A DNA stretch of 64,000 bases from Haliotis rufescens (Eukaryota). The stretch spans positions 4,216,001-4,280,000 of the forward strand of contig NW_025964001.1 of assembly GCF_023055435.1 (NCBI RefSeq), in the 5' to 3' direction. Shown here piece after piece: positions 48,601-51,600 of the stretch. A program made the translations under genes and the position numbers. The notes beneath the pieces were generated by a model. It did no database searches and had not been told where the DNA came from. It saw nothing but the letters and a program-made list of their open reading frames with translations. Numbering within the stretch: the stretch's first letter is position 1; every line of letters begins with the position of its first letter.

Positions 48601-51600
48601 ATTACTTTAGCTAGTCTTGTTCTTCCTGGACAGCTTAGATTATAGTGTGTCTACTCTTTTGCCCAATGATGTGAACTGACAAGTTGAGGCAGGGACAGCA
48701 AGGTGTCTTTTGTCTTTTTCTTGTCTGTCTTCTTATTTCTTCTTGTTTCCTTCCTTTTGTCTGTCTATTCCCCACTGTCCTGTCATACTGCTATCTCTCC
48801 ATCTCTCACTCCCTTCTTGTGTATACCCCTCCACACCTTGCTGTTGGCCATTGAAACTGATTATGAGAGCTGAGGGTGCCGTAAAATTGCATTAAAGATT
48901 GTAAACAAGAATTTCTTTTGAGTAAGAAAATTGAAACACATCAGTTATGGACATGTTAGATGTTGTTTCTTCAAGGTACTCAAAGAGTTGCTCTTCTTAA
49001 ATCATTCAGACCACTTTTTTTTAAATGTGATTTCAAGTTTCAACCTTTTTTCCACATTTAAAATATCTTTGAATTTTATTTCACATGTTTCAACATGTTC
49101 AAGGACATGTTTACTAAAGCATTTTGATCTTTGAAACATGTTTTGTTGTGTTGATGTAGATCTGCAGCTTGTCACACTGGTAGCCATGTAACCATAGTAA
49201 CATATTGTTCCAGGTATTTGCCACGTGAGGTGGACCCCATGGTGTATAACATGTCAGTTGAAGATCCTGGTGCTGTGGGATACAATGAGATTGGAGGTCT
49301 AGGAGAACAGATCAGAGAGCTTAGGGAGGTCAGTGTTTGATGTATTGCAGATTCAATCAAATAGACATCCCCTGTTTAATCATCTTAATAGGAGTTGCTG
49401 GTGTGCTTCTTTCATCACATAATAATATATGTAAATGATCTACTCATATATACTTAGAATTACCATTATTTGTTAGAAATGAAGAATAATTTTCAGTTTG
49501 GTGCTGCCTCATGTTAATAAGTGACTTCATCACATTTCTGGCCTGAATGTAATAACTTTGTTGTAAACACAAAGAAATGATTTTTCCTTGCCACTGTGAA
49601 CATGTTTCTTATTTCAGGTGATTGAGTTGCCTCTCCTGAACCCGGAGTTGTTTATGAGAGTGGGTATCACCCCACCCAAAGGCTGTCTGTTGTATGGGCC
49701 CCCGGGAACAGGGAAAACACTCTTGGCCCGAGCTGTAGCTAGTCAGCTGGACTGTAACTTCCTCAAGGTAACCACATGGAAAATAGATAGGAACTTGTCT
49801 CTCTTCACCATGTTCATGTTGAGTTCTGTTTGGGGGTGAATAGGGTAGCCTAGTGGTTAAAGCATTCGCTCATCACACTTGTAAAGACCATGTGTTAAGC
49901 CGATTTCTGGTGTCCCTTACCAGTACCATGACATTGCCGTGATTTTGCTGAAAGCTGTGTAAAACAATACTCACTCATGTTTGTGCATTCTGGATGTACT
50001 TGATGCAAAATCATGCATCATATGTGCATAAATTTGTAAACAGACACCCTCAAGAAATACAGAGTGTATTCATATGTGATCATTTAAAACATACCATTCA
50101 CAGTTGCTTCATGATCTGTGAGCACTAGAATGTGTTGATTCATTTTGCTTGTGGTAGAATTCTGTATTCAACTTTTGCCATTCCTCTTGGACCCCCTATT
50201 TTTAAACCTGGGACCCCTACAAATAAAGGCTTTGGTTCGCCTTGACCTGCACAATTTAAAACCCAGGTAAATCCCTGACTATTTTTTTTCGCAATGGCAA
50301 CTTCTTCCTTTGAACTTGAATCTAGATGACACATCTAATATGTCTTGTTGTGTTTAGGTGGTGTCTAGTGCTATTGTGGACAAATACATTGGAGAGAGTG
50401 CCAGGCTCATCCGAGAAATGTTTGCTTATGCCAGGGATCACGAACCATGTATCATCTTCATGGATGAAATTGATGCCATTGGTAAGACTTTCATGTTCAT
50501 GCACACTGGTGGCTGTTGGTGAGTTCTAGGAACACCAGCTTATCCCCTGGCTCATTGTATGTCCCTGTACCCTCAATGTATGGATTGTTGTCCAAACTAT
50601 CAACTATTTTCCTGGTCCAAACTTTAGTTTAGCTGTCTTTACTGGATGGTTGGTGTGAAGCTAGCCTATGAAATGCTAATTTCCTGCAGCCTACATGCCA
50701 GTCATGTCATTTAGTTCAGTTTACTGACCAAGTTCAAGCATGTAAACAATCACAGCTTGGGATTCTTTTGTTTCTGTAGTAAAACAAAACCTTGAAAAGC
50801 TCTTGATTCAGGAAGCCGTCCAATATACTTATTTAACAAATGAGAAACTGTGACAGCTACAGGGATAATTCTAGGGTGGGGCCTTGTGCTTTTAGCCCTT
50901 AAATTTAAAAAAAGGCCCACATTATTAAATACAATGGGGCATTTTAACATGGGCAAGTGTGGGTGTACCTCTGGAATATTTGAAATTTTCACACAAAGGG
51001 CCCATGTCAGAGAATTCCTAGAGTGAACCCTGCCGCTATCTTTTTTCACTCACTCTCAATTTCCTATTTAGGTGGAAGAAGATTTTCAGAAGGTACATCA
51101 GCAGACAGAGAGATCCAGAGGACTCTTATGGAGGTAACTTTTGTGCTCGACTACTGGGTGTAATAGTGATGGCAGTGGGATGGGGGAGTCGCCCAATGAT
51201 GTGAACTGACAAGTTGAGGCAGGGACAGCAAGGGGTCTGTTGTCTTTCTCTCGTCTATATTCTTCCTCCTACTATATATCCATCCTTTTGTCTGTCTATT
51301 CCCCACTGTCCTGTCATTCTGCTATCTCTCCATCTCTCACTCCCTTCTTGTGTATACCCCTCCACACCTTGCTGTTGGCCATTGAAACTGATTATGAGAG
51401 CTGAGGGCACATCATTAGCAGAAAAGTAAATCATGACAAGACAATCTCTTTCACAAGATCTAGATTGTGTGGGATGAAGAACTAGAGTGGTCAAGATTAT
51501 GATCCATTTTTGAACTATAGTGAAAAATATATGTTTTGGGGGGCATCATGAAAAGTTAAGTGTTAACAGGTCATACATGAATGATTATGGTTAGCTTTTG

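Follow-up and report, generated by a model that had tools for sequence, protein, structure and literature searches.

The stretch of DNA analysed here, referred to below as the window, comprises 64,000 nucleotides of the Haliotis rufescens genome (NCBI RefSeq assembly GCF_023055435.1, contig NW_025964001.1, positions 4,216,001 to 4,280,000 of the forward strand), and positions are those of the window unless another contig is named. It contains the gene for the proteasome ATPase PSMC6/Rpt4 together with three related units, numbered copies 1 to 3 in the direction of reading, two of which are intact box C/D RNA genes lying within introns of PSMC6. A first-pass annotation had described one of them (copy 2) as an intronic box C/D RNA that would 2'-O-methylate the wobble nucleotide C34 of elongator tRNA-Met, and had proposed an invertebrate RNA-guided tRNA modification system amplified to three copies. 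The sequences presented below place the units, with good probability, in a family of guide RNAs already known from human cells, and all of the elongator tRNA-Met genes detected in the same genome turn out to carry an intron, the conserved start of which may extend the pairing with the guide.

The PSMC6 locus and its box C/D RNA units

The PSMC6/Rpt4 coding region extends over 45540-52814 on the + strand, its exons being read singly. The mapped exons are 45540-45639, 47378-47457, 48258-48378, 49214-49328, 49618-49767, 50358-50481, 51072-51133 and 51668-51788, followed by a last exon that ends at the stop codon (52812-52814); a further short exon would lie between 47458 and 48258, and further exons between 51789 and 52697. 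When the exons were searched one by one, unjoined, the first and the last matched only chains of PSMC6/RPT4 (26S proteasome regulatory subunit 10B), and an internal exon matched fragments named proteasome subunit T4 by JGI. The proteasome ATPase host named in the first-pass annotation is thus confirmed, and the copies are on its sense strand.

Copy 2 is an intact box C/D RNA gene of 217 nt (48661-48877, + strand), the anatomy of which can be read directly. Its terminal stem pairs GCCC (48661-48664) with GGGU (48874-48877). The C box, AUGAUGU (48666-48672), agrees with the consensus RUGAUGA at six of seven positions; the U at position 7 can form a wobble pair with the G located upstream of box D, and the UGAUGU variant is common to other members of the family. 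An 11-nt D' spacer, GAACUGACAAG, and a D'-like UUGA (48684-48687) occupy 48673-48687. A perfect 12-bp stem, formed by ACAGCAAGGUGU (48695-48706) and ACACCUUGCUGU (48833-48844), then closes a pyrimidine-rich insert of 126 nt (48707-48832, 83% C+U), and beyond it lies a degenerate, putative C'-like box, UUGAAAC (48851-48857), whose UGA core aligns with the AUGAUCA or GUGAUCA of the relatives described below. The 3' end is made up of a 12-nt spacer, UGAUUAUGAGAG (48858-48869), the D box CUGA (48870-48873) and the GGGU of the terminal stem. As a whole, the RNA is less well folded than its shuffles (z scores of +2.0, in copy 2, and +2.5), which agrees with the description of the SCARNA97 insert (PMC6601510).

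Within the 12-nt spacer lies the antisense element GAUUAUGAGA (GATTATGAGA in the DNA; 10 nt, 48859-48868), separated from the D box by a single G (48869). The terminal stem, the C and D boxes and a 10-nt guide one nucleotide upstream of CUGA are therefore all where they had first been placed. Read upstream from the D box, the letters are G, A, G, A and G, and the fifth nucleotide is indeed the G opposite the C of the CAU anticodon, as had been claimed; under the fifth-nucleotide rule, C34 of elongator tRNA-Met is the nucleotide predicted to be selected by the guide.

Copy 3 (51191-51408, + strand) is likewise intact and has 93% identity to copy 2. Its terminal stem is GCCC/GGGC, its C box lies at 51196-51202, and its guide (51390-51399) is followed by the D box (51401-51404) and GGGC (51405-51408). 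The stem that closes its insert (51225-51236 paired with 51364-51375) contains one mismatch, and the insert itself is 80% C+U; the inserts of both intact copies are 126-127 nt long. Both copies occupy GT-AG introns of PSMC6 on the sense strand: copy 2 lies in the intron at 48379-49213, starting 282 nt past the donor and leaving 336 nt to the next exon, and copy 3 in the intron at 51134-51667, where the corresponding distances are 57 nt and 259 nt.

The claim of an amplification to three copies holds in so far as three loci exist, but only copies 2 and 3 are intact and intronic. Copy 1 (45128-45368, + strand) has decayed, although its guide and D box are still intact. Its C box reads AUGGUGU, a form in which the A of the sheared G-A pair is missing and which falls outside the C-box pattern; the CUGA found after the C box is now AUGA; the 3' strand of the insert-closing stem has been deleted; and there is a 45-nt insertion. 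The PSMC6 ATG (45540) is 172 nt downstream of copy 1, which stands just upstream of CTTCCGG-type motifs and is probably outside the host transcript and not intronic.

The 15-mer that joins guide and D box, GATTATGAGAGCTGA, has three exact matches in the window (45350, 48859 and 51390), all on the + strand; shuffles gave 0.85 matches to the 15-mer with two mismatches permitted, and about zero exact matches are expected. When the 217-nt unit was searched against its own 1.33-Gb genome, it was found at three places only, all at the PSMC6/Rpt4 locus. Because the genome holds only these three copies, the unit is not a high-copy dispersed repeat, an alternative raised when the RNA was first noticed. 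Seven other genomic matches to the 15-mer pattern have neither a C box nor a terminal stem in place and were rejected as box C/D RNAs. In an alignment of the three copies with their flanks, similarity runs from about 6 bases before GCCC to the GGG after the D box, and since it is bounded at the two ends of the RNA gene, the duplicated unit is the RNA gene itself. A candidate fourth copy, a remnant at 48586, failed to align. Elsewhere in the genome (locus L209, C583:42,836,780, - strand) there is a fourth exact GATTATGAGAGCTGA, followed by GG; a weak C-box-like AUGAUAU occurs about 95 nt upstream of it, and the GCCC/GGGC stem is absent. This locus is probably a chance match, though it may be a short paralogue.

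Relatives and probable membership in the SNORD97/SCARNA97 family

In human cells, SNORD97 (in an intron of EIF4G2) and SCARNA97 (in an intron of LARP4) jointly make the 2'-O-methylated C34 (Cm34) of elongator tRNA-Met, and this modification shields the tRNA from angiogenin and stress-induced cleavage (PMC6601510), just as the first-pass annotation had stated. A pyrimidine-rich region of 93 nt is required for the Cajal-body localisation of SCARNA97, and the two vertebrate RNAs go back to one ancestral gene that was duplicated (PMC6601510). For insects, Ciona and plants, Vitali and Kiss (2019, PMC6601510) reported a single candidate for SNORD97/SCARNA97, in which the antisense element is invariant.

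The likeness to human SCARNA97 (also called SNORD133), which we draw from its description and not from an alignment, covers several features of copies 2 and 3: an intronic box C/D RNA on the sense strand, an element at the D box that selects tRNA-Met C34, and a long, unconventionally folding pyrimidine-rich region (93 nt in human, compared with 126-127 nt and 80-83% pyrimidine here). The resemblance in frame and insert that had been pointed out earlier is accordingly borne out by the descriptions in PMC6601510. In contrast to SCARNA97, the RNAs described here have PSMC6 as their host, with two intact copies in this one gene, a 12-bp stem closes their insert, and their target tRNA is made with an intron. 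Human SNORD97 has the same antisense element and the same target, but it is a nucleolar RNA; our units have no Rfam small nucleolar RNA (snoRNA) match. The candidates from Drosophila, silkworm, honey bee, Ciona, Arabidopsis and rape (Suppl. Fig. S3C) are non-vertebrate guides of a single family and represent the class of the present RNA; here too the likeness is one of description, their sequences being published as an image, and our locus differs in having three copies.

To look for relatives, metagenome contigs were scanned for the 18-mer GATTATGAGANCTGAGGG, which is present at no fewer than 80 loci (at least L081-L160). At least 25 of the loci listed have CCC and a strict C box 137-241 nt upstream, and at least 32 have CCC and a slightly relaxed C box 137-247 nt upstream; many of the remaining listed loci also possess the end consisting of C' box, spacer and guide. 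The predicted relatives share a frame in which UGCCC-RUGAUGN is followed by a spacer of 11-14 nt, a D'-like xGAG(GG), an insert that varies, a C'-like xUGAxxx and, lastly, the guide. Across the relatives listed, UGCCC...GGGC is conserved and the antisense element is invariant, whereas the rest of the RNA drifts.

A profile built from the 5' 48 nt only of 26 distinct relatives, which had been picked by their 3' 18-mer, was run on the 64-kb window. Copies 2 and 3 were the two best matches (E 0.0022 and 0.011), and copy 1 came fourth (E 1.5). The insert-closing stem was assessed in 30 distinct sequences (27 relatives plus the three window copies): in 20 of the 30, the segment after D' and that before C' form better pairing than shuffled sequences do (z < -2); the median z is -2.7, and the letters of the stem differ from sequence to sequence, which is covariation in a loose sense. 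The inserts of the relatives range from GC-rich structured hairpins to pyrimidine tracts (58-68% pyrimidine in eight of them). With these similarities in sequence and architecture, we consider it highly probable that the units are box C/D guide RNA genes of the SNORD97/SCARNA97 family.

When the eight PSMC6 exons were compared singly by tblastn with the 80 metagenome loci listed, no match was found; PSMC6 is thus not a detectable host at these loci, and the host genes of the relatives appear to differ, as is usual for snoRNAs. Judged by the contig names, several of these eukaryotic relatives come from termite-gut samples. In one of them (L121), a match to SNORD41 (3746-3816, 42.7 bits) lies about 3 kb upstream of the SNORD97-like unit on the same strand, which suggests a multi-snoRNA host gene.

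Some observations speak against the assignment of the units to this family as functional guides. Searches of Rfam by cmscan identified no snoRNA family in the whole window at the gathering threshold, in the 44-54 kb region at E up to 10, in the unit alone, or in 20 metagenome relatives at the gathering threshold; the 126-nt insert would depress any Rfam score, and Rfam 15 may hold no model for SNORD97/SCARNA97. Matches to SNORD28 (16.8 bits) and sR41 were at chance level and were rejected. The C' and D' boxes are degenerate, and their assignment is our own and putative. For vertebrate intronic box C/D RNAs, the optimum distance to the 3' splice site is about 70-80 nt, and the 259 and 336 nt found here are beyond it and atypical. 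Finally, copies 2 and 3 are identical across their last ~100 nt, and the likeness of these paralogues thus points to a recent duplication or to gene conversion rather than to purifying selection.

The decay of one of the three copies, the atypical distances to the 3' splice sites and the failure to match Rfam would be in keeping with the view that the units are unexpressed relics of an old snoRNA duplication, any modification of the tRNA being made by something else. However, copies 2 and 3 retain the terminal stem, boxes C and D, the guide and the closing stem; the units are the only loci in the genome in which this guide stands in a box C/D frame; and the same architecture recurs throughout a widely conserved family. 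We therefore regard relic status as quite improbable, and retain the family assignment.

Since invertebrate candidates were already in print, the units are to be viewed as a further member of the SNORD97/SCARNA97 family and not as a new system. The earlier proposal of an invertebrate guide system survives as regards a new member and a new host, but its novelty was overstated in view of the candidates of Vitali and Kiss (2019). What the locus adds is an extension of the published guide family to another invertebrate lineage and to the new host gene PSMC6, together with the presence of a SCARNA97-type pyrimidine-rich insert outside vertebrates; such an insert therefore probably predates the vertebrate duplication or arises repeatedly.

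Elongator tRNA-Met genes and their predicted pairing with the guide

Two patterns were used to find elongator tRNA-Met genes in the genome: a D-arm pattern, which gave 201 genes, and an anticodon-arm pattern allowing 0-30 inserted bases, which gave 179. The target UCUCAUAAUC (tRNA-Met nucleotides 31-40), the complement of the guide, occurs in the tRNA alignment of PMC6601510 and likewise in the tRNA-Met(CAU) genes of this species, so that the earlier note's prediction of this sequence in the tRNA holds. Nearly all of the genes form one tandem array of 511-bp units on C594 (~46,817,000-46,920,000; L071-L080), and two single genes are located on C101 (L069) and C589 (L070). TATA-like sequence precedes the genes, which also possess T-run terminators, and the spliced tRNA-Met differs from the Xenopus/human-9 sequence in the alignment of PMC6601510 by one compensated acceptor pair and by nothing else.

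All of the detected elongator tRNA-Met genes carry an intron at 37/38, which is 27 nt long in the array and 18 nt and 23 nt long in the single genes. The Rfam tRNA model matches at 56-57 bits over its full length with an insertion in the anticodon loop, and ARAGORN, with introns allowed, identifies tRNA-Met(cat) and places an intron of 27 nt at position 38. In its default mode ARAGORN found tRNA-Met nowhere, because introns are ignored in that mode. Patterns for intronless tRNA-Met, applied to the whole genome, returned nothing real, and no intronless junction was found. An Rfam tRNA search of the whole genome was uninformative, as it produced 329,534 first-look candidates (tRNA-derived short interspersed elements, SINEs), 63 of which were scored. 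The first-pass annotation had assumed an intronless tRNA-Met. That assumption has to be given up and, with introns in all of the genes found, the likely substrate of the guide changes as well.

All three types of intron start with AUCA, and that of the array with AUCAGU. The precursor therefore retains complementarity to the 10-nt core of the guide across the exon-intron junction and adds further pairs to it. In the array precursor, the 5' extension of the guide, ACU, pairs with AGU of the intron, and the predicted duplex has 13 bp and -18.6 kcal/mol. Of the duplexes predicted for the single-gene precursors, that of C101 has 11 bp and -14.3 kcal/mol and that of C589 has -17.3 kcal/mol, compared with 10 bp and -13.2 kcal/mol for the spliced tRNA. 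Opening the target is predicted to cost 0.2-1.0 kcal/mol in the precursors versus ~3 kcal/mol in the mature cloverleaf. Because each tRNA-Met intron found extends the complementarity to 11-13 bp, the substrate may be the unspliced tRNA-Met precursor, a reading that we rate as very nearly an even call. That the guide is adapted to this intron-containing precursor, with the conserved intron start lengthening the duplex from 10 to 11-13 bp, is a proposal that we make tentatively and that falls noticeably short of even likelihood.

It is also conceivable that the same guide makes the same modification on spliced nuclear tRNA only, as in human cells, and that the complementarity of the intron is a coincidence or a by-product of the origin of the intron. 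The 10-nt core suffices in vertebrates, whose tRNA-Met has no intron (PMC6601510). Moreover, the first three intron bases repeat the first three bases of exon 2, and the match of the precursor to the core could therefore reflect how the intron arose. Two further points tell against adaptation to the precursor: three additional pairs would arise by chance with a probability of ~1/64, and the two outermost pairs of the 13-bp duplex would take up bases that belong to the putative C' box. On the other hand, the U directly 5' of the core is mismatched to U41 of the spliced tRNA and yet is able to pair with the fourth base of the intron in each of the three types. Most of the relatives listed have A or G at this site, able to pair with U41, and several of those listed have UCA there, which extends the pairing along an intronless tRNA. 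In addition, the 98 array genes listed show no variation in the first seven bases of the intron, whereas the later positions vary. Action on spliced tRNA only is thus a real possibility, although we hold it to be rather less than probable, and the precursor is kept below as the candidate substrate.

The D' spacer of copy 2 (48673-48683) contains ACUGAC, which is complementary to tRNA-Met nucleotides 26-31 and adjoins the main duplex. For 25 distinct D' spacers, 23 of them from relatives and the others from window copies 1 and 2, the mean length of the longest match to the tRNA is 4.8 nt, compared with 4.0 +/- 0.3 nt in shuffles, and the five spacers with matches of 6-7 nt (those of L090, L094, L124, L155 and copy 2) all match at tRNA positions 20-36. 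The D' spacer may thus provide accessory pairing to the same tRNA arm, which we mention as a lead only.

A further alternative is that the RNA, if expressed, has its main role elsewhere: it might guide another RNA that bears the same 10-mer, or its pyrimidine tract might serve to bind proteins or to direct localisation. The genome contains the 10-mer at more than 2000 places, the insert is unusual as well as large, and, as noted above, the RNA is less structured than its shuffles. However, it is the antisense element that is invariant across the family while the remainder drifts; the D' spacer is complementary to the same tRNA arm; and the human element acts on tRNA-Met, a screen of stable RNAs having yielded no other target (PMC6601510). 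A main role other than the modification of tRNA-Met is accordingly very improbable.

Proposed mechanism, parallels and neighbouring features

We propose that copies 2 and 3 are expressed with their host, being released from the spliced PSMC6 introns and then trimmed to the terminal C/D kink-turn, and that the released RNAs would assemble with Snu13, Nop56, Nop58 and fibrillarin into a ribonucleoprotein. In this particle, GAUUAUGAGA would pair with nucleotides 31-40 of elongator tRNA-Met and present the 2'-OH of wobble C34 to the active site of fibrillarin, giving Cm34. The pyrimidine-rich insert, with its 12-bp stem between the D' and C' boxes, resembles the Cajal-body targeting element of SCARNA97, and the units may be localised accordingly.

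The introns of elongator tRNA-Met, tRNA-Met(e), have been considered possibly ancestral and lost in animals (2026 review, PMC13578239). According to the same review, human Cm34 is formed on a tRNA that has no intron, and what the tRNA-Met(e) intron does is left open there (PMC13578239). An intron in tRNA-Met is a feature that this genome has in common with plants and that has not been reported for animals. What appears to be new here is thus an intron-only elongator tRNA-Met repertoire in an animal, with a guide that is predicted to fit the precursor best.

Parallels exist among Archaea. The sR-tMet RNA of Haloferax volcanii directs Cm34 of elongator tRNA-Met, as predicted for the present RNA, but it is an archaeal sRNA and does not lie within an intron of an mRNA gene, and we claim no homology. 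It is reported to act on the intron-containing precursor (Joardar et al. 2011). In archaeal pre-tRNA-Trp, Cm34 also depends on the tRNA intron, but there the intron itself is the guide, whereas here the guide would be a separate RNA and the intron would supply target bases only. If the guide is indeed adapted to the precursor, the locus would represent a eukaryotic case of intron-dependent RNA-guided wobble methylation, parallel to that of haloarchaea, and would provide a reason for keeping tRNA-Met introns. This genome offers an animal in which to ask if Cm34 precedes splicing, and if the 5' end of the intron co-evolves with the guide.

Three other features of the window were recognized. In the first coding-region intron of PSMC6, a near-perfect palindromic hairpin of 99 nt (46559-46657, both strands) matches the plant microRNA models MIR7696 and MIR1888 far below their cut-offs, and is probably not a microRNA but a small inverted-repeat element. 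A tRNA-like element at 39286-39344 (+ strand), scoring 30 bits, just above the Rfam cut-off, and having a GUC-type loop, looks like the head of a tRNA-derived SINE. On the opposite strand, the neighbour of PSMC6 (55445-59533, - strand) is an animal ASPP/PPP1R13-like gene, with ankyrin repeats and SH3, which has a low-complexity exon of 606 aa.

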